NCBI GenBank assembly: GCA_965644495.1
Contig: CBFFSA010000005.1
Location: 744,001-808,000, forward strand
Source of the DNA: Perkinsela sp. CCAP 1560/9
Lineage: Eukaryota > Protista > Euglenozoa: Kinetoplastea
DNA: 64,000 nucleotides
Direction of reading: 5' to 3'
Shown in pieces: positions 32,146 to 47,770 of the stretch. A program made the position numbers and the translations under genes. The first letter of the stretch is position 1. Each line of letters begins with the position of its first letter. The notes under the pieces were generated by a model. That model did not search any database and had not been told where the DNA came from. It worked only from the letters and a program-made list of their open reading frames with translations.

Positions 32146-32870
32146 TTTCTGTACCTTGTTGTACTTTTTTTCCTAGCTCATCTTTTCTCTCCCGGAAACG
32201 GGCATATTTTTACAATGTCAATGCCCGTTTCCGGATGGCGCTAGGAGAGGAACTGTCCCTCTTGTCGCAAAGCAGGGGTGCGCCTCCCTTCCCTCATCTC
32301 CCACCACCCTGCTCGGAACACGGTGACGAGTCCCCATGCGCTGCAGGACCCTACTACGGGACCACGCGGCGTGCCTTCACTATCCGGCGACACCGGTACT
32401 GCGCGTAGGAGGCTTCCATATACCGGAAGTCTCCCACACGGCGAGCAAACACGTTGTATGCGTGTTCTAGAGGATGTTCTATGCACCTCTCTTGCTCACC
32501 AGCCGTGGCGGATTCTGTGGGACCCCGATGCCCATGATGCATCATGAACCATGACTCCATTTGCCAGCATGCATCCATGGCCCTGACCATGTTGTATCAT
32601 GAACCATGGAAGTCATTTGTAGCATGTACGATGGGAATATCACCCGCGTCCCACAAATTCGTATATCTTTCCTGGCGCACTGCGCTTACAAAACATCTCG
32701 GGACATCATATCCCGATGAGGCCGTTTCTTTTCGCTTTCCTGGGGAGGATATCCCGCGCTTTTCCCTGTGTTGCCTCGGAAGGCGAAAAGGTCCAGCAGG
32801 GAACGTTGATTGCGCTTACCCCTGCTCGACCTAATTATCTCTACAGGTACTGCCCTGTATGAACAAACAA
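32146..32870 (+). mobile_element. SL-headed structured non-coding element (family S, copy 1)
   Basis: Starts TTTCTGTACCTTGTTG; 14-bp stem 32192-32234; blocks homologous to 39068-39624 on the minus strand. Confidence 0.6.
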
Positions 32871-32876
32871 TCCCCC

Positions 32877-33713
32877 CTAAAAAGGTGTCCCCAACACCCC
32901 AGGATCCACATAATACCCCCCCGCCACCACCTCCCCCCTCGGGGCCGTCACCAGCCACGTCGGGGTCCAGGCCCCTTGCGAGGCCGTACGCGGGGCCTGG
33001 TCCCATCCCCCCATATCGGTGGCACACCACCCGGGGTGGCAGCACGTCACCCCCACCGTGTCCCACCCCGGGGAGCGCGACAGCAGCCGTGTCGCGACCC
33101 CCACCCCCGCCTTACTCACCCCGTAGGGCGTGCCGTGCCAGCCCTCCTCGGGGCGGCAGCGGTACGCAGCCATCACGCCGTTGAGGGTCTCGAGCGTGAG
33201 GTTGGGGTCCCGGAGAGTCTCCAGGGTGGAGGGGGTGGGGGCACTGTGGAGATACTCCCCGAGGAGACTGGAGAGGTTAACGACCCGAGCGGTACCGTCT
33301 CGGGGGAGGAGGGGGAAGAAGTACTGACAGACCAGGAGAGTGCCAAAGTAGTTCGTGGTGACACACGACTGGGCTTGGTCGGGGATGGGGTCCGTTTTGT
33401 TCCACACCCCTGCGTTGTTGACTAACGCTGTGATACCCTCCGGATGGGAGGATTTTACTTTTTGTGCGGCGGTTGCAATGGAGGTTTCGTTGCTAACGTC
33501 CATCTCAATAAATTCAACCGTGAGGTTCGGAAATTCTTTTTGTATTTTCTGTACGGCTACAAGCCCACGTGTGAGGTTGCGGCAAGCTAGGATGAGATTG
33601 TAGCCATGTTCTGCAAGATTGCTTGCAACAAAAAATCCAATACCCTTGTTGGCACCGGTTACAAGAGCCGATCGTCTATTCATATTTTGAACTTTAGAAA
33701 GAAAAATGAACAA
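32877..33713 (-). CDS. Short-chain dehydrogenase/reductase, carbonyl reductase 1-like (start probably MNRRS, ~33683)
   Basis: VTGANKGIG, NNAG, YGVSK, CHPGWCATDMG. Confidence 0.9.
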   Translation of the reverse strand: MFIFLSKVQNMNRRSALVTGANKGIGFFVASNLAEHGYNLILACRNLTRGLVAVQKIQKEFPNLTVEFIEMDVSNETSIATAAQKVKSSHPEGITALVNNAGVWNKTDPIPDQAQSCVTTNYFGTLLVCQYFFPLLPRDGTARVVNLSSLLGEYLHSAPTPSTLETLRDPNLTLETLNGVMAAYRCRPEEGWHGTPYGVSKAGVGVATRLLSRSPGWDTVGVTCCHPGWCATDMGGWDQAPRTASQGAWTPTWLVTAPRGEVVAGGYYVDPGVLGTPF

Positions 33714-34240
33714 TCAGTATCGAAAAAATGAATCGGTGCCAAAAGACGTAAAAAAATATTTTGGGGGAAAAGGGGTCCATATTTGGATGGCGGTAAGTCT
33801 TGAATGGGGGGTACCCAGAATCCATTGTTTTCATGAGTTTGCCGAAAATGAAACGGTTACGAACGCACTTCCTTTCTGCGATGACAAAACGAAATGGATT
33901 CTTTAACTGGGTTAAAAGAAAACCGTCGGCTACTGTAATTATAGACAATGCCCCCGGCCATGGGCATGCCCGCCGAGTCGGACGTGACATGGGAATTGAA
34001 ATCCCCGACTGGCCGGCCAAGTCACCAGATCTAAATCTTATTGAAAATTTATGGAGCATGATGGATCATATTAAGTTTCATCTTCGACCCACTAATCGTA
34101 CGGAATTACAAGTATCGATACGTAAAGCTTTAGATTATCTTTTAAAGGATATGAAGGCAGCGTATGAAAACACTTTGAAAAGTTTTCCGTCCCGAATTAG
34201 GCTTCTTAGAGAAAAAAATGGAGGTTCAATACTAAAATAG
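33706..34240 (+). pseudogene. Tc1/IS630 (DDE_3) transposase C-terminal fragment
   Basis: VHIWMAVS; IIDNAPGH...WPAKSPDLNLIENLWS. Confidence 0.8.
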
Positions 34241-34465
34241 TTCGCCCAAAAAAATCTGCAAATTCTTGAAAATCTCAATTTTGTCATGTCCAGAATTCTT
34301 CATACATAATACGTATATAATTTTTAAAATGGGTTTCTATACCGCAAAACAGCTTAGAATTTCGAGATCTGTTGAATGCCGAAGGAATTAGGTCAAAAGC
34401 TTACACGACACAAATTTTAGACCCCCCCGCGGAAATTGGTGACCCCCATGTATAGGGGGGCAGGA

Positions 34466-34740
34466 AACCCAGGCTAAAGTGGACGAGGGAGATACTAAAG
34501 GCACCTTTGGAAAACCACCTCAAAAATGGAACGGTATCTCCCGTTAAAGACCCTTTAGTATCTCTCTCGTGCACTTTAGCCTGGGTTACATAGCCATCGG
34601 AACATGCTCCATAGGACCTCTTACAGGTTCCCACGCGAGGAAGTCGTCGTCGCCGTGGCAAAAAGACAGAAGGCTCCGCCTTCTGCCTTTTGCCTTGCGC
34701 CTCCTCCTTCCTCTACAGCCTTGCGTGTCACACACTTCCA
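34466..34740 (+). mobile_element. Family B repeat
   Basis: AACCCAGGCTAAAGTG...CACTTTAGCCTGGGTT plus shared tail. Confidence 0.72.
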
Positions 34741-35229
34741 TGTAAATTTTGGACTTTGTAGGTGTATTACCGGAACAGGGTGAATAAATATTGAATTTTT
34801 AGGAAAAAACTTCATTTTCAAACTTTTTTGCCTGGGTGAAAAGAAAGGTGCTAGTCTTGTAAGGCGTTTCCTACACTTGAATAATCCATGCTTACGCCAG
34901 CAGATGTTCAATGCTGGATTTCGTTTGTGTGGAGTACCGCGCCCTTTATGCACTGTGTAGTAAGAAGGGAATGTTAAGTAGCTACAGGAATGCTACATAG
35001 CTACAGGAATGTTAATATACTTTTGAAGATTGTCTTGGGTTTACAGTACGATTAGTCGACGGGTGAAAGAAAACGCTTTTTTTATAACTTTTCAACTTGA
35101 CACTTTTCTCTTCTAAAAATATAAACCACTGTCCCGGTTAATATTAAAATATATAAGAAAAAACGAAAATGTGGCCTAATTGCAGAATTTTTCACTTTAG
35201 AAACTCAAGATTTACACGCATACACAAAG

Positions 35230-35952
35230 CTACGCAAGAATTATGGAAAGAGATACAATTACCCCAACGGCAAGTAAGGCCATATGATGTATTGGTTCAT
35301 TCGATTCATCCGCAACAACTACTCTACATGAAATATGTTCTGGAAAGGGAATAAGGTTATTACGAGATAAATCCAAATAAACAAGAGTTTCAGGCAGTTC
35401 GCGAATGTCAACATACCCTTCCAACATGTTTCTGGCTACGTTAATTTGCTGGATTCGATGTGGGAGAGAAGAAACGTCCAGCGTTCCATGAAAAAGATTT
35501 TTTTGCAATTGGAGATAAACAAGATTATGGGGAAGTGCAGTGAAGTCTAGCGTTCCTGAAAAACGGTTCCGCTGTAGATGCACGTGCGACAACCCAGAGG
35601 GTAAGGCATACAGGGGTACGGGACCATGGAGCATGTTGTTGTTCAGAGAAAGAAATTCTAGCGTTTGAGGGAGATGTTCCCAGGAGAGGTTTCCCTTTAG
35701 CTTTTGACTCCCCCATTCTAAAGCTACGACGTGCTTCCCTTTACATCGAACACTGTTCCATAACTGCGGTATATTCTCTGATCTCCAGGTAGGAGACTTG
35801 GGATGGACGTGTTCCACAAACCTACTCAAAACAACTTCCGGGGGAAAGATGGAAAGACGCGACTTTCCCAGGCGAACACTGGAATTATCGTCCATTTCCT
35901 CACAGGGAACTGATAGGAGTAGCCGTCTCATAAAACAAGAGAAAAAGAGCAA
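35230..35952 (-). CDS. LRR family protein with C-terminal hydrophobic (TM-like) segment
   Basis: GKSRLSIFPPEV, LRRs, ends MALLAVGVIVSLSIILA. Confidence 0.85.
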   Translation of the reverse strand: MLFFSCFMRRLLLSVPCEEMDDNSSVRLGKSRLSIFPPEVVLSRFVEHVHPKSPTWRSENIPQLWNSVRCKGKHVVALEWGSQKLKGNLSWEHLPQTLEFLSLNNNMLHGPVPLYALPSGLSHVHLQRNRFSGTLDFTALPHNLVYLQLQKNLFHGTLDVSSLPHRIQQINVARNMLEGYVDIRELPETLVYLDLSRNNLIPFPEHISCRVVVADESNEPIHHMALLAVGVIVSLSIILA

Positions 35953-36450
35953 CAGCTTATTGGAGCAATAGTTGAAAATATCATCTAAAATTTAAATGTA
36001 TTTTAAATGGCTCTCTTTGATGTAGCTTTTCACAAAAAGTATCAAAGAAACATTCGTTTTTCAATACATTTTATCACATTTACAGGCCTTTATTATCCAA
36101 AGTTCGTTCCTTGTGAAAGGACGAACTACGGCGCACCGCATCTATCTGCTTGGATTTCGTATCGACGACCATTTCGTATCATCGCTTAAATTATGCGACT
36201 AAAAAAATTCTCGGAGTTAATCTTGTGATCTCAACGCGTTGAATGAAAAAACATTCTTTTATCTCTCATAGTCCAAGCTTCAGTTCTGTTTAGCATGGCA
36301 AAATTCTTCTCAACACCACGTATTCCACGTTCACTATAATCTGGTGTTCTCATTCTTGAACCTTAGTACGTAAAAAAAATATGCCCATTCTTAAAATGCC
36401 CATTCTTCAAAATTATACCTATTCTTACGGGCATCGTGATACAACCTTGG

Positions 36451-37685
36451 CACCCGCACACTGATAACGCATAAAACTCGCACTGATATTGCATAATGCA
36501 CACTGATAATGCATATAGGCACACTGATAATGCATATTAGCACACTGATAATGCATATAGGCACACTGATAATGCATATAGGCACACTGATAATGCATAA
36601 AACTCGCACACTGATAATGCATAGTAACTCGCACACTGATAATGCATAATGCACACTGATAATGCATAATGCACACTGATAATGCATAATGCACACTGAT
36701 AATGCATAATGCATACTGATAACGCATAATGCACACTGATAATGCATGAAGCCTATATTAACACAAAGACTGTTTTTTTTTGATAATTTTTGTTGCGTTT
36801 TAGTATGAGTGAACCACGAAGTTAACGCATAGATTCAGAGGACCGCACCATGATTGAGGTGCTTTACAATCAACAGAATTTCACCCAAGTTCAAATTGCC
36901 GCGAAATTTTGTCTTGCACACGGGTAAACAAGGTCTTGGCTTTATTAACGGTGGGGTATGGTGGAATTGTTGGGCTTCGCAAATGGGTAAACAAGATCTA
37001 GGTTCATTGGCCCGGCCGGACCCTCCGTGCGCTCGGCCTCTCATTTCCCCCAAAACAACAACCACCTTCCCCCCATTTATCAGGGGTCGCTCGCGCGACC
37101 CCCGCTAAATAGGGGGGAAAGGTGGTAGTTGTGGGGTATGGAGGCCTCTCGCAACTCCGGGGCCTCACCGGGAACAAAGGTGAAATTATTAGCCGGACGG
37201 GTAAACAAGGTCTTGGCTTTATTCCGAGTTGGGTGTGGTGGAATTGTTGGGCTTCGCATATTGCTTCCCACTAACGTCAGACGTTTTTATCTTGCAGACG
37301 GGTAAACAAGGTCTTGGCTTATTACGGGTTGGGTATGGTGGAATTGTTGGGCTTCGCAAATAACTTCCCACTAACGTCAGACGTTGTTATCTTGCAGACG
37401 GGTAAACAAGGTCTTGGCTTCCGCCTTTTTTTCTAGAATTTTTTTTCAAGGGCCTTTCTCCAATTTTTTTGAAGGGCTCAATTTTTTTTTGAAGGGCTCA
37501 TTTTTTTTCGAAGGGCTTGCTCAAAATATGCATTATCAGTGTGCGAGTTTTATGCATTATCAGTGTGCGAGTTTTTATGCATTATCAGTGTGCCTATATG
37601 CATTATCAGTGTGCTAATATGCATTATCAGTGTGCCAATATGCATTATCAGTGTGCGAGTTTTATGCATTATCAGTGTGCGAGTG
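36451..37685. mobile_element. Foldback-like element with inverted arrays of CACACTGATAATGCATA
   Basis: 19-22-bp units at 36457-36747 and inverted at 37528-37680; CAC...GTG ends; internal CGGGTAAACAAG repeats. Confidence 0.75.
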
Positions 37686-37752
37686 GCCTTCCCCATAATA
37701 ATGCCACTTGCGATGTCCGATATAGGAACAAAAAATTCCTTATATTCTATGA

Positions 37753-38601
37753 TTATACACCTCTGTTGAATATCCCTGTTCCTTCTACCCTTAAATAGCT
37801 CAATCCCTTAGGCAGAGATGATTTTTGCACCTCACCGTAAAGTTCAGCGTTGTCGTTCAGCCATAATGAATTTAATCTTGAAGGAAGAGAATTAAAACGT
37901 ACCAAACCTGAGAACTCATTGCCGCTACAGTATAGCGCTCCCAAAGAAGACGCCAAGTGCTCCAGATCAAGAGGGCCTGTGAATCGGTTGGCACTTAAAT
38001 CAAGAACTGTAAGACGGGGTGGTAATTGGCTCAGATTCACGGTTCCTGAAAAAAAGTTGATGTTAAGCATTAAAGAAGCCAAATTGGGGGAAAGCTGCGT
38101 CAAGTCAACGCCTCCTTCGAATTTATTCGAGGGGAGTACGAGGCGCACTACGGAAGGAGGTAGATTTGTCAAATCTACACGACCATCAAACGCGTTGTAC
38201 CCTAAGTCGAAGTTCGAAAGCGAAGATGATAATACACCTAACGGTACATTTCCTGTAAATTTATTTTTTGCAACCTTAAATTCGATCACGGTTCGTGGTA
38301 ACCAATCCCACCGCAGAGATCCATAATACTTGGTGGATAGCCACTTTAGGGGATCACTCGCCCACATAATATTCGCCACGAGTAAGTTATCGCCACACTT
38401 CACTCCTTTCCACTTACACGCGGGAGTCGACACGACCCAAGTAGGGTCCGGATTGCCAACTCCTTCGACGAATTTCACCAATTCATACTCCTGAGGCACA
38501 TTCACGGCCCGCACTTTACCTAGGCGGCTCTGCGGCGCCTTTACGGGCATCTCATCGGCTGCGCGGTATAATGGAGTCATTCCTGTATAATATTTCGGCA
38601 A
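37753..38601 (-). CDS. LRR family protein
   Basis: GKVRAVNVPQEY, TPACKWKGVKC, LRRs. Confidence 0.88.
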   Translation of the reverse strand: MPKYYTGMTPLYRAADEMPVKAPQSRLGKVRAVNVPQEYELVKFVEGVGNPDPTWVVSTPACKWKGVKCGDNLLVANIMWASDPLKWLSTKYYGSLRWDWLPRTVIEFKVAKNKFTGNVPLGVLSSSLSNFDLGYNAFDGRVDLTNLPPSVVRLVLPSNKFEGGVDLTQLSPNLASLMLNINFFSGTVNLSQLPPRLTVLDLSANRFTGPLDLEHLASSLGALYCSGNEFSGLVRFNSLPSRLNSLWLNDNAELYGEVQKSSLPKGLSYLRVEGTGIFNRGV

Positions 38602-38815
38602 CCAAAAACAGACAAAAGCTATTTAGGCGCAGCAATCGAAAGAATACAATATTAAAATATGCTTTCACCACCAATTTATACTCCAGAAAGGAACACCCAT
38701 TTGAAGTAGCTTTTGCCCTTAATAATTCCACATAAAAAACCTTGTTTTGCTTAGAGAACATTTTTTTGTGACATTGAACCGAAAATTTAAAACTTATTGA
38801 TTAGATGTATGTAGT

Positions 38816-39067
38816 TTATTGAGTATACCGCGGAACTACCGCCGTATTATCGTATTGCACACCAAACAATAAAGAAATAGGAAGATGCTCATAGTCCAGC
38901 TCTCCTTTTAAGTCAACGTTATTTCCCAAAGTTAATGACTCGATATGTGCCGGTAAACGTTTTAAATCAACCTCACCGCCAAATTGATTATTGTGTAGGT
39001 GAAGCTGTCGCAGAGCGGAAGGAAGATTGCTCAAACTAAGTGATCCTGAAAATTCGATATTGTGGAG
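38816..39067 (-). pseudogene. Probable 3' part of the LRR gene split by a 2.8-kb composite insertion
   Basis: Joining to 41896-42567 gives MTHLY|LHNIEFSG, which keeps LRR register. Confidence 0.65.
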
Positions 39068-39624
39068 CTGTTTTTTCATGCACTTATAGTGCAGAGATTT
39101 GCCTCACTACATGTCCTTACCCCGTATACGACGGGCGGATCACGTGAGGGTTCGCCTTCGCCTATGGCAAGTGGGTGCAGAGAGCTGGCGTCCCAGGTGC
39201 AGAGAGCTCGGTTGCCATGTGCAGGTGCAGAGATCCGGATGCGTAATCCCCACATTACAGTTTCGGGGGCAATCCGGGTGCAGAGAGCTGCGACAGAGCC
39301 GAGGTGCGGAGAGCTGGGTGACCGCCAGGTGCGGAGAGCCGGAAGTCGTAGCGAAGGACACGTCTAGTGGTCCTCAAGGGAGGCCACCGTGACGCATTGC
39401 CTCCTCGGAAAGGTAGACACGAGAAAGAAAAGCCGAGAGAGGGAAGCACACTCACTCCAGGAGAGTGAGTCTGGGAGGGGTGAAGGGTGAAAGGTGCGTC
39501 CCCTGCTTCAACAAAAAGAGGGACAGTCCCGACCTTAGTGCCGGCCAGCAAAGGGCATATAATTACAGTAAGACTATGCCCGTTGCCGGGGAAAGAAAGG
39601 ATGAACAACAAGGTACAGAAACTG
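39068..39624 (-). mobile_element. SL-headed structured non-coding element (family S, copy 2)
   Basis: Minus strand starts CAGTTTCTGTACCTTGTTG; CCGG.AACGGGCATA stem; ACTGTCCCTCTT..AGCAGGGG; ends TGCATGAAAAAACAG. Confidence 0.6.
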
Positions 39625-39625
39625 A

Positions 39626-41028
39626 GGGTGTTGCTAATCCCTGGACAGTATGCTGCCCAGGGACACAGCAACTCCCCATTATCTCGGCGTAGTAAACACG
39701 CCTTGGCTTGCCTGACACTGTGATCGCCGAGAGAGAAAAAAAATATTTCTCCCGAGTCATTTCACAGCCCAGAATGCTTCCCACTTAAGGGGCCCGTTTC
39801 CGTATCCGAGTGATCTCCCCGGCAACACGTCTTTCGACGTGCGTCAAGAAGGCTGGGATACGGAACCAGGGTGTGCAAGTACGTGCTGTACTCGCACGTT
39901 TAATAAGCTCTTTTTTTTTACGGATTTCCTTTTTTTTAGCACTGATCACAAAGATCACGAAGGCCACAAACGGTGGGTCACAAAGATCCCAAACACGAGA
40001 TAACAAATAATGGGTCATTAAGATTTCAAGTGAACCGATCACAAAGATAACAAACAAACAAACAAACAAACAAACCAATCAGGTAATATACACATCCGAT
40101 TACAAAGATCCCGTGCAATGAATCATAAGGACTTCATAGATACCAAACAAACGATCACAAATATCCTAAGTAAGGGGTCGAAAAGATCACAAAAAAAACA
40201 GATCACAAAGATCCCCATACAACCAATCCTCAACAACCGATCAAAAAGCTCCTGAACAATGGGTCACAAAAACCCCAAAATAACGTATATCAAAGATCCC
40301 AAACAACGGGTCACAAAGATCCCCAAATAACCGATTAAAAGGCTCTTTTTATAATGGGTCGCAAAGATAAATACCACAAAAAACAACAAATAAAAACAAG
40401 ATTCTAAACAAACGATCGTTAACATTCTAAACAATAGGTCACAAAGATTTCGAATAACGGATCACAAAAGTCACAAGCAATCTGTCATAAGGCTGCGAAC
40501 ATTATAAAGATCCAAAATCCTGCATCTTAAAGCAAACTTCTAATATTTGCCTTGTGATTTTTTTTCCCTTTTCTATCAACGCGACCCGCGCAATGCATCC
40601 AATAATGCGGCGTTGGCAATATATTTACAACCTACAACTTACTCGCTTACTCGTCTCCCATAGCGGGATGTAATTTACCAACCCTTTTTTTTTCTTTTCT
40701 TTTTTGCAGAAGCGACCAAGGCGAGATCTTGCTTCCCCTCACGGGACTTTACATATTCTCGGGGAGGCCCCCCACACAAATTCTTTCAAGCAGATCCAAA
40801 TCATTCGTGCGTACTTCGCACCGGATCTTCCGACTTCTGTTCAGCCTGCTTCTTCTCGTGCCACGAGAGGCGCGAGAGCTGGGCATTTGCCTAGAGCGGC
40901 ATGATCACGTTTTTTTCTCTCTCTCGGCGATCACAGTGCCAGGCAAGCCAAGGCGTGTTTACTACGCCGAGATAATGGGGAGTTGCTGTGTCCCTGGGCA
41001 GCATACTGTCCAGGGATTAGCAACACCC
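39626..41028. mobile_element. Element with ~120-bp TIRs (GGGTGTTGCTAATCCC...), possibly PIF/Harbinger- or Mutator-like
   Basis: Near-perfect inverted repeats 39623-39742 and 40910-41031; internal degenerate GATCACAAAGAT repeats; flanks TGA/TCA. Confidence 0.7.
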
Positions 41029-41626
41029 TCATTATCACAGACTTCATAAGCACCTTGGAACCGGAACCAAGCCCAGTACGCCTGGCAAGCCATGGCACCG
41101 AATAGCTCTTCTTTTTTCTCCTTCTTTCTTCTTCTTATCCCTCAAAAGTGGGACCATATGCTTGCTCACATCGTTCGAAGATCAGTTTCGGACGTCATAT
41201 CCCGAGTCACCTACCGTTCGTAAAGCACACTAACATCCCACTAAACAATCGTAGCAAATGTTTCACAAAGACCACCGCTACTAAAAGCTCTAAACTGCGG
41301 TACGTTTGACGGCGCGCTGGATCAAACAGCGAGGCGATCACATTTCGAAAAGTAGACTTCCTTATTTCTATGCCCCCTTTTCTTCACGTTTTCAAAAGTA
41401 ACAATTCGAAACAAAAGCTTCTTTTTTTCTCTGTGACAATCGTAGGAAATGTTCACACATTTCCAGAGCACCTTCATCCTACAAACATCAGTCAAGCTAT
41501 GGATGGTGCCACCAATCCTCCTCTTCTTCCTTCACCTCAAAAAGGACTTGAAACAATACATTAAAAAACAGCATCAAATCGGATCTGAATCTCCGATATT
41601 CCGGTCGAAATCTCCTCATCGCGCAA

Positions 41627-41850
41627 ACAAAGTCCAAACCTCACTACACCAATTGTAGCGGAAATAGAGCCATAAAAGGCATCGGATCATAAAATCCGGA
41701 ACACAAAACAAGTCCAAAGGACCTCACTACACCAATTGTAGTGGAAATGGAGCCATAAAAGGCGTCGGATCATAAAATCCGGAACATAAAACAAGTCCAA
41801 AGGACCTCACTACACCAACTGTAGTGGAAATGGAGCCATAAAAGGCCTCT
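41627..41850. repeat. ~82-bp tandem repeat, about 2.7 copies
   Basis: AAGTCCAAA(GGA)CCTCACTACACCAA.TGTAG.GGAAAT.GAGCCATAAAAGGC three times. Confidence 0.8.
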
Positions 41851-41895
41851 TTTATAATAAATAGCCATAAAAGGCCTCTTTATAAATGAGTCTTT

Positions 41896-42567
41896 GTATA
41901 AATGAGTCATGGCACTCGGAAGGTTGTCGAGATTGACTTCACCAGAGAAGGAGTTAAAGCTGAAGGAAACAACCAACAAATTTTGAGAAAGCACTGTTAG
42001 ATCCACAACACCATAGAATTGATTATTCTCCACTGATATTTCTTTTATCTTCTTAGGAAGTTGCGCAGTTTTAAATGTTCCATTGGCCGCGTTATTACGC
42101 AAGTTAAGTACTTTCAAAAAAGGAGACAACTGAAAAAGTGGTACTTCCCCGCAAAGATTGTTTCCAGGAATCTCAAGTCTAAGAAGCGAATGAGGTAGGT
42201 ATTGCCATTGTAGCGATCCAGCTGTGCAAAAATATTCCCAATTGATATGTATCACTTCCGATTGCTCATTGCATTCAACTCCTTTCCAATCACAAGCGGG
42301 GGTAGCATCATTCCACGACGAATGCTTCTCCTGCACATTTTCAATAAGCCGCGTAAGGTCAAACTCTGCAGGGAGTGCTACACCACGAACTTTTCCCCTT
42401 ACAGCCGGAAGAGAATGCCGGTTATTCTCTCGCATCGACATGTGCATACCCTCTTTTTTACGTTTCTTAGCAAGGGGTTGATGAGGATCTGATGAATTAA
42501 CAGGCATACAAAATACCCAATAAAATGTGAGAAAACGTAAAAGCATTTTCAGCCATAGAGAAAACAT
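41896..42567 (-). pseudogene. 5' part of split LRR gene
   Basis: GKVRGVALPAEF, TPACDWKGVEC; LRRs stop abruptly at THLY. Confidence 0.75.
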
Positions 42568-46392: not shown

Positions 46393-46774
46393 GATAATTC
46401 AACTAAAACTGAGTACCTAAAATTGAGGTTTATAATTTCGACAGTGAGTTTAGAATTATAATCCTAAAATTTTTTACTAACTTTTACCAACTAACTTTTT
46501 TAGAGGTTTATAATTATTAATGAGAGGGGGAGTACCCGCACCGACCCGGTCATAAAATATTGTGTAAAATATTGCGTAAAATATGTGTAAATTTCGTATA
46601 ACTTGACCAATGTTGGAATTCGTAGCCCATTCGGGAGCTTTCGCAATGATATAAATCAATGCAAAGCATGTTCACAGAAAATCAATCAGATGTGATGCAC
46701 ATAATCCACATTTACAATGTTCGGTACGAAATATTTCGCGAGATCAAAACCAGGATACTTCGACGATAAAGGTG

Positions 46775-46793
46775 CAGTTTCTGTACTTTGTTG
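46775..46793 (+). other. Spliced-leader exon 3'-end-like motif CAGTTTCTGTACTTTGTTG
   Basis: 18/19 match to the kinetoplastid SL 3' end CAGTTTCTGTACTTTATTG. Confidence 0.65.
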
Positions 46794-47770
46794 AATTCTA
46801 CTGTATCTCCTTTCTTTCCTTATTTCTCCCCCCCCCCCCCCCCATGGCGGAACTCCCTCTCAAGGGGCTTCTGTTCTGCGCGTACTGTGGCTCGAAATAC
46901 GACCCACCCACCCCTTCACAACAGACTTTTACCGCGGAGGATAGTACCGCGGCGTTGCCTTTCTGAGCAGCAACATTAATAGCTTGTAGTGCATGACACA
47001 GGAAACCTTTCGTGTCATGCGTATACCTTGCGATCTCCCTTAGGAGTACAGTGCGCTTCCCTGCCACACCAAAAACGGTAAATACAAGGGGGTAAAAATG
47101 CATACCCTTTTAGTCGCCATGTCACTGTGCGCCTTTTCTTTTATGCTTTCCACCCTTTCTAGAGTGTTGCCAGGCGCTACCCATTCGGCCTTAACATAAG
47201 AAGGGGCGAGGGGGTTAACGACGGTTACGTCCACCAGACATACCTTCCCTCCCAGCATAAGTTAAGGTTTGCTTTTAGATGTCCTTAGATTTTCCCGATA
47301 AATGTTTATAACCCCGAAAGGCCTTTGGGTAAAGTCGATCGATGGCTTTAGTGATTTCTTCAGTAGACAGCGGTTGTCGTTCCTTTGCCTCTAGCGCTTT
47401 TGCTTTCCCGATCGCACCAAGTTTAAGCAGTGCCTCTGCTCGGCCTAATTTTGCCACACTCTTGGTTGCAGGTGAGGGGGTGAATTCTGGTTCTTGCTCG
47501 GCCATCTGCTTTCGTAGTTCATACGCCAGTTGCCGATGAGTCAGTTGACTTTCAGGCAGGAATAAGAACTGCTTCACTGCGCATAATAGGTTCCATGACA
47601 TCTTTGCTTTTGCGTCTGTGTGTTGTATTTCAAAGTCTCTGCATATTCCACCGCATAATTCCTTCCAGCACGGTAATTGAATGTGATACAATTTACGCAG
47701 ACTAGGTCGTGTAATCAGTTTTGTGTATGTTTCCCACAGGCTTTGTATTTCGTGGAGGCGGAAGATTTAT
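46794..47770 (-). mobile_element. CRE/SLACS-like non-LTR retrotransposon remnant (RLE endonuclease kept, RT deleted)
   Basis: LVDVTVVNPLAPSY...E..K; FYPLVFTVFG...INVAAQKGNA; upstream RAEALLKLGAIGKAKAL. Confidence 0.68.

Follow-up and report, generated by a model that had tools for sequence, protein, structure and literature searches.

The 64,000-nucleotide stretch of DNA analyzed in this study, hereafter called the window, covers positions 744,001 to 808,000 (forward strand) of contig CBFFSA010000005.1 in assembly GCA_965644495.1 of the kinetoplastid Perkinsela sp. CCAP 1560/9; it lies on contig 5 of an assembly that comprises 21.0 Mb in 110 contigs. Two elements of this window are the subject of our analysis: copy A at 32146-32870 (+), a full-length member of a family of about 725 nt (family A), and copy B at 39069-39622 (-), a member of a second family (family B), within the sub-lineage that has the spliced leader (SL) joined directly to TTCATCC. 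Both assignments were made by genome search. We consider it likely that A and B represent two related families of non-autonomous, non-coding retroposons resembling short interspersed nuclear elements (SINEs), which spread by way of trans-spliced RNA and of R2-like long interspersed nuclear elements (LINEs). A first-pass annotation of the window, made from its letters only, had already proposed a SINE-like retroposon, and this reading is supported insofar as both families are mobile, non-coding and possess SL-exon 5' ends.

The 16-mer TTTCTGTACCTTGTTG is located at 32146-32161 (+) and 39621-39606 (-), with a one-mismatch copy at 46778 (+); shuffles of the window lead to an expectation of 0.07 matches. 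Throughout the assembly, it occurs 726 times with at most one mismatch, compared to 2 occurrences of a reversed control. Only 4 of the 726 belong to SL RNA genes (one 297-bp tandem pair and two singles; C1:661312-661655, C2:801571 and C25:23935), in which the end of the exon reads ...ACAG TTTCTGTACCTTGTTG and is followed by GTATGAG; more completely, these genes consist of ...CTTTAACGATAAAGATACAG and the 16-mer, then GTATGAGAAGC and a stem-loop. Because the four SL RNA genes carry the 16-mer at the exon end, TTTCTGTACCTTGTTG is the 3' end of the SL exon; CAGTTTCTGTAC is the core that is conserved in kinetoplastid and diplonemid leaders. The claim that both copies start with an SL 3'-end motif thus rests on firm ground: the leader of this genome does not differ from the motif but ends in exactly the same letters. 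Four assembled SL RNA genes are very few for a kinetoplastid-type genome, and the main SL array may be collapsed in, or missing from, the assembly. Another observation concerns the opposite end of the leader. All eight full-length SL pieces at element heads, which we call relics (L013, L015, L016, L018, L024, L028, L060), show N-T before CTTTAACG, whereas the four SL RNA genes show A-A or A-G, and the T is without template in any assembled SL gene. It may result from reverse transcription across cap-adjacent modified bases, or derive from an unassembled main SL array.

The relic of copy A comprises the last 16 nt of the SL exon (32146-32161, +), identical to the close of the exon in the SL RNA genes, and TTG is followed directly by TAC, i.e. 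there is no GT after the exon end. Further downstream, the minimum-free-energy fold places a 5' hairpin with a 14-bp stem (CCGGAAACGGGCAT / ATGCCCGTTTCCGG) at 32192-32234 (+), and the copy closes with a 3' module at 32837-32870 (+) – ATCTCT, the hairpin ACAGG/CCTGT and ATGAACAAACAA – which is the common 3' end of the A copies. Compared with shuffles, copy A folds far more stably (z = -6.2). The genome search with this copy yielded at least 13 near-full copies with 90-98% identity on many contigs, together with many 5'-truncated ones that start at query 36, 83, 133, 140, 242, 390, 470, 519, 556 and 567. The 3' end of the family is fixed, with every copy stopping at query 748-755; varied starts combined with a common 3' end constitute the classic 5'-truncation pattern of retroposition without long terminal repeats. 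The boundaries obtained from the search (query 27-751, equal to 32146-32870) are the same as those drawn in the first-pass annotation, and the further copies that it anticipated exist for both elements. Family A contains an open reading frame (ORF) of 96 aa that is intact in 9 of 11 copies. Its ratio of nonsynonymous to synonymous differences per site (pN/pS) amounts to 0.49-1.03 and is not below that of the two other frames; since the ORF does not differ from these out-of-frame controls, we regard the elements as non-coding, as had been supposed from the lack of a convincing ORF.

Family B is the larger one: at least 40 scored copies among 191 candidates, with 82-97% identity, were found with copy B as the query. 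Most of these copies are known by their coordinates, and the sequence was read for a subset. Members are about 557-572 nt long (canonical copies about 572 nt), the family boundaries correspond to query 27-582, i.e. 39624-39069, and three B heads are without the SL prefix. In copy B, the relic is 17 nt long (39606-39622, -) and was shortened on its upstream side by an element with terminal inverted repeats (TIRs); at its inner end TTG is followed by TTC, again without GT. The 5' hairpin (CCGGCAACGGGCAT / ATGCCCTTTGCTGG; 39545-39589, -; alignment and fold) contains the C-G version of a compensated pair, and the 3' module at 39069-39098 (-) contains ATCTCT, the hairpin GCACT/AGTGC and ATGAAAAAACA. 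The stability of the fold against shuffles is modest (z = -1.9). An internal tandem-repeat zone had been attributed to both copies in the first-pass annotation; Tandem Repeats Finder detects short arrays in copy B and none in copy A, so that only half of this claim stands. Similarly, the CAG placed at the head of the motif needs to be revised for copy B, in which CA represents the last two bases of the TIR element.

This TIR element (39623-41031, no strand assigned) is not part of the SINE. It is 1.4 kb long, has 126-nt terminal inverted repeats that are 97% complementary, and was inserted into the SL relic of copy B between ...GATAA and GTTTCTG. Internally, it contains repeats of about 23 nt and no long ORF. 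In a sample of loci that had been chosen by the SL motif, 5 of 6 ends of such TIR elements abut GTTTCTGTACC.

The relatedness of families A and B resides mainly in the first ~133 nt (69-80% identity), to which significant BLAST similarity between copies A and B is confined (69%), and in the 3' module. A third related family, C, is represented by the loci L003, L009, L011 and L065. The blocks that the first-pass annotation described as common to both copies are real: the pyrimidine tract, the CCGG.AACGGGCAT/ATGCCC hairpin, ACTGTCCCTCTT..AGCAGGGG and the ATCTCT..ATGAA.AAACA end are visible in pairwise alignments as well as in an alignment of 22 sequences. It was also right that no GT intron follows the motif in copies A and B, unlike most of their relatives, which show GTAC after the exon end. 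The relics vary in length. In 29 SINE heads, exact SL relics of 36, 31, 29, 28 (four times), 27 (twice), 26 (twice), 25, 24, 22 (twice), 21 (twice), 19 (twice), 17 and 16 nt or shorter were counted, and none of these heads has a relic that extends beyond the SL 5' end into foreign sequence. Family A copies carry 10-36 nt of the leader, and the motif is accordingly present at the terminus of other members too.

The relic is followed by the pyrimidine tract and then by a hairpin of 10-14 bp, which is kept in all 22 aligned heads. One pair of its stem is compensated – A-U in families A and C, C-G in B – and represents weak covariation evidence. At the 3' end, ATCTCT is followed by a stem-loop of 4-6 bp, then by ATGA and finally by a short run rich in A. 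Each family has stems of its own sequence (ACAGG/CCTGT and GCAGG/CCTGC in A, GCACT/AGTGC in B, GCGC/GCG[CT] in C, GTAGAA/TTCTAC in a LINE), and altogether at least five different, fully complementary stems are found between ATCTCT and ATGA. Stems that differ and yet remain complementary are good covariation evidence for a functional 3' hairpin. The A and B copies end in ATGA and the short A-rich run instead of poly(A), and regular target-site duplications (TSDs) are absent: the flanks match over 2.9 nt on average, the same as in a shuffled control. Copy A is flanked on both sides by CCCCCCT, the sole 7-nt flanking repeat among the copies compared. As to classification, both families are short, non-coding, dispersed, multi-copy and accompanied by 5'-truncated copies, as SINEs are. 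What they do not show is a head of tRNA, 7SL or 5S RNA origin that contains an internal Pol III promoter, given that no Rfam family matches A or B at the gathering threshold or at E<=1; their head consists of the SL relic and a family-specific hairpin.

The insertions show a target preference. In 9 of 29 A/B copies, the 3' flank starts at the Leu codon of a leucine-rich repeat (LRR) unit (L-x-x-N-x-F-x-G), a phase that is found at 0.09% of positions in the LRR-rich window (p ~1e-18). Where the upstream flank is readable, it ends in LP..L..L.x of the preceding LRR unit. The LINE in L067 is inserted in the same LRR phase, with a B copy one LRR unit further on, and in L065, L066 and L068, SINEs sit directly behind the tails of LINEs or of other SINEs, with the LRR flank after the last element. 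This arrangement suggests that the target is recognized through sequence located 3' of the cut. Copy B conforms to the LRR-site rule: its 3' flank reads LHNIEFSGSLSLSNLP and continues to a natural stop at 38816, and the downstream gene fragment at 38816-39067 (-) opens with the Leu codon of an LRR unit (LHNIEFSG...). The N-terminal, upstream part of the LRR gene that was split by the composite insert is located at 41770-42567 (-), according to the ORF list and the sequence. Between the TIR element and this part, there are about 850 nt (41037-41890, -) that include three 83-nt tandem repeats at 41638-41886; this stretch possibly represents an earlier insertion belonging to the stack at this LRR site.

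Copy A, by contrast, was inserted off target, outside the LRR site. A distance of 6 nt separates it from the stop codon of a short-chain dehydrogenase gene on the opposite strand (32877-33713, -), whose GC content of 54% compares with ~43% in its surroundings and which sits between copy A and the remnant of a Tc1/mariner-like transposase (33800-34240, +). Between the two copies, a foldback-like structure at 36421-37685 consists of inverted arrays of 20-21-nt minisatellite units around a center of ~0.9 kb. Another observation concerns the reading frame at the tails (copy A, 32859-32870; copy B, 39069-39083). The tail of family A (ATG + 9 nt) places its ATG in the reading frame of the LRR codons that follow it in all five precise insertions (L032, L034, L036, L039, L043). 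The tail ATG of copy B is in frame as well and opens a frame of 88 codons up to the natural stop of the gene, whereas canonical B tails (ATG + 8 nt) are out of frame.

More than 1000 reverse-transcriptase (RT) candidates are present in the genome, and four LINEs (L065, L066, L067, L068) were read. All four start with an SL relic joined to their own 5' untranslated region (UTR). A separate ORF1 lies upstream of the RT ORF in L065, L067 and L068; RVT_1 was detected in each of the three scanned RT ORFs (L065, L066, L068) and zf-RVT in two of them. For ORF2 of L065, the best solved relative is the R2 protein of Bombyx (8gh6; E = 2e-32), with an alignment that extends beyond the RT domain, and the C-terminus displays a CCHC knuckle, RHD and a PD..E..K motif. 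The predicted endonuclease is consequently of the restriction-like type (RLE), not an AP endonuclease. The LINE tails of L067 and L068 (ATCTCT GTAGAA..TTCTAC ATGATAACA) have the architecture and the flanking motifs of the B tail. In their bodies, SINEs and LINEs show no relationship. For a partnership with RLE LINEs speak the presence of such a LINE in the genome, the shared target site, and the absence of both poly(A) and regular TSDs, and R2-like LINEs are probably the mobilizing partner of the A/B elements.

Other SL-headed sequences were noticed along the way. The window contains a third relic, 31 nt long with 3 mismatches, at 46763-46793 (+), which heads a zinc-finger ORF1 start. The region 46763-47100 (+) comprises this relic, a 5' UTR, a C-run and the ORF start MAELPLKGLLFCAYCGSKYDPP, which resembles the zinc-finger ORF1 starts of SL-headed LINEs (L010, L028, L029); the region has the appearance of a LINE whose 5' end is degraded. 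Different SL-headed LINE families (L002, L065, L067, L068) have GTACTAAC in common, 20-30 nt past the SL relic, and this motif looks like a branch-point consensus. In L013 and L015 (C1, ~1.44 Mb), full SL relics directly follow poly(A) runs of 12-22 A; the impression is one of elements from other SL-headed families with poly(A) tails that are stacked head to tail.

The position of the junctions is informative for the question of how the leader was acquired. At their 5' ends, the elements carry the SL exon copied into DNA; the RNA that was reverse-transcribed thus bore the SL, and the earlier conclusion that genomic SL junctions imply reverse transcription holds. All junctions lie exactly at the exon end, whether the element is a SINE or a LINE whose 5' UTR is unrelated, and SL RNA intron sequence is found in none of the relics read. 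Canonical B heads read SL-GTACTTTTTCCTTAG TTCATCC, whereas in copy B and 15 others the SL is joined directly to TTCATCC; in copy B, this is exactly after CTTTTTCCTTAG of the canonical B head, a polypyrimidine-AG site. The copy-B-type junction (16 copies) exists on both TTCATCC and TTAATCC bodies, each of which also occurs in canonical form, and therefore the internal site was probably used more than once. Furthermore, nine loci genome-wide carry double relics, with an SL end joined to the 16-mer after a CAG inside the SL (control 0; one example is L062). Junction positions and double relics point to trans-splicing of the element RNA. Of the two options left in the first-pass annotation, the SL-capped one is supported, while SL priming finds no support.

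We therefore favor the following model, in which two related SINE-like families rely on trans-splicing and on R2-like LINEs. The RNA of an element would originate from polycistronic transcription of the host and would gain the host SL by trans-splicing, as the junctions in the DNA suggest; the RNA ancestral to copy B would have been trans-spliced at the internal polypyrimidine-AG site of the family head. The 3' module (ATCTCT, stem-loop, ATGA, A-rich end) would then be recognized by the protein of an R2-like LINE, and target-primed reverse transcription would start preferentially at one LRR codon boundary, just before the Leu of LxxNxFxG. Reverse transcription to or towards the SL 5' end would leave variable relics, 5'-truncated copies, no poly(A) and no regular TSD. 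The LRR target preference, the variable relics, the 5' truncation and the absence of poly(A) and TSDs are observed, unlike the trans-splicing and recognition steps, which we infer. Several points weigh against the model. The signatures of trans-splicing of the element RNA come from DNA. The genome search turned up no source locus in which an AG immediately precedes the canonical GTAC head and from which the commonest junction, SL-GTAC, could be renewed. Variants of the junction (TAC in four A copies, TTTTTTT in one) seem to have been passed on from copy to copy rather than made anew in each cycle. Only about one third of the copies occupy the LRR site, and copy A is elsewhere. Finally, no LINE in the genome search has the stem sequence of either tail: 17 genome matches were obtained with the specific A tail, in family A only, and 39 with the generic A/B tail, all in these SINE families except one unrelated match. 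The pairing of particular SINEs with particular LINEs is therefore putative. As to the SL-GTAC junction, it is possible that a master locus is missing or has diverged, or that it is renewed by relic-guided template switching onto SL RNA.

Template switching could, in fact, be considered for the entire process: the RT would switch, guided by the relic, from element RNA, or from read-through RNA with an old relic in it, to the abundant SL RNA or any SL-capped RNA, giving rise to chimeras like those of U6 and L1. R2-type enzymes jump between templates, and a mechanism of this kind would let parents with truncated relics regain a full-length SL, would account for inherited-looking junction variants (TAC versus GTAC), and fits the absence of an AG-GTAC source locus in the search. 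Nevertheless, we consider it unlikely, as every junction falls exactly at the exon end and none contains SL RNA intron sequence, the copy-B-type junction falls exactly after polypyrimidine-AG, and the double relics exactly after CAG inside the SL – positions that are predicted by splicing, not by template jumping. What might also be supposed is an origin from the SL RNA gene itself, by analogy with tRNA or 7SL heads, so that the head would be the 5' part of an unspliced SL RNA including the exon and the donor GTA. Most copies do have GT after the exon end (TTG followed by GTAC), and the SINE head and the SL RNA gene each possess, ~30 nt downstream, a hairpin starting with CCCCGG. The local alignment of the SL intron with three SINE heads, however, is no better than with shuffles, and since the similarity is at chance level, this origin is very improbable; moreover, protein-coding LINEs bear the same relic on unrelated 5' UTRs without GT, and copies A and B lack the GT as well. 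In trypanosomatids, the promoter is situated upstream of the SL RNA gene, and a copy would not take it along. There is hardly any probability left for a last group of explanations, according to which the SL piece is target DNA – an insertion into the SL, as for SLACS, CZAR and CRE – or belongs to duplicated gene heads, or is an assembly artefact. In favor of the SL as a target, one may note that another element, the 1.4-kb TIR element (39623-41031), is indeed found within SL relics. The flanks of the A and B copies, on the other hand, are LRR codons or unrelated DNA on both sides, the SL is present only at the 5' end and in variable length, and the copies are spread over many contigs with 82-98% identity and classic 5' truncation; the flank analysis contradicts the SL as a target.

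Known systems share individual features with this combination of trans-spliced SINE-like elements and R2-like LINEs. SL relics on retrocopies have been described for genes of dinoflagellates (PMC5585692, PMC6050394, PMC12014239): there, as here, a DNA relic of the host SL stands at the head of the genomic copies and ends at the exon boundary, and stacked, truncated relics result from re-splicing at an AG inside the relic, comparable to our nine double relics. The carriers, however, are LINEs and SINE-like families in the present case, not cellular genes; A and B are without a poly(A) remnant, the SL is of the kinetoplastid type, and integration would be by an R2-like enzyme at a preferred LRR codon site. 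With the R2/CRE clade, the system shares a probable partner LINE with RT, CCHC knuckle and PD-(D/E)xK endonuclease, a structured 3' end in place of poly(A), the lack of regular TSDs, target preference and 5' truncation. It differs in its target, the codon boundary of a protein-coding LRR family rather than rDNA or SL RNA genes, in SINE bodies that are unrelated to those of the LINEs, and in its 5' end, which is made with the SL, whereas R2 uses a self-cleaving ribozyme. RIME, NARTc and SIDER (PMC2323293, PMC1874656, PMC8190864) are likewise short, non-coding, LINE-dependent retroposons of kinetoplastids. They have A-rich tails and TSDs of ~12 bp, while A and B have a hairpin module, no TSD and an SL relic at their start, and the Pr77 5' signature of ingi/L1Tc and their partners drives unspliced transcripts (PMC1874656). 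SLACS, CZAR and CRE1-2 (PMC12278014) are also RLE-clade LINEs of kinetoplastids that are linked to the SL, but their insertion site is the SL exon of SL RNA genes, whereas in our elements the transposed copy itself includes the SL and is flanked by LRR or unrelated sequence. Only four clades (CRE, INGI, TATE, VIPER) are listed among the transposable elements of trypanosomatids (PMC12278014). In our literature search, no account of SL-headed LINEs or SINEs from kinetoplastids came up, and the SL 16-mer was met with in no indexed paper; the suggestion that the family is undescribed fits this result, which does not prove absence.

The retroelement route would be new for kinetoplastids: SINE-like elements and R2-like LINEs both carry the host SL as a heritable 5' relic. 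Like the DinoSL relics of dinoflagellates, such a relic labels retroposition events from within, here in a genome of the kinetoplastid type, and the elements may represent a new kind of SINE, in which mRNA processing by the host takes the place of a Pol III promoter. Each element carries a polypyrimidine-AG splice acceptor, and family A and copy B additionally possess an ATG in frame with the downstream LRR. We mention, as a rather doubtful extension, that these might be SINEs without a promoter of their own, which use polycistronic transcription and obtain 5' end and cap by SL trans-splicing, and which possibly act as mobile heads of LRR genes. If this is true, such heads could restart truncated LRR genes and thereby reshuffle the repertoire of surface proteins. 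More generally, with an RLE-LINE system aimed at a single codon boundary of a protein-coding LRR, a very large gene family could be disrupted and remodeled over and over.

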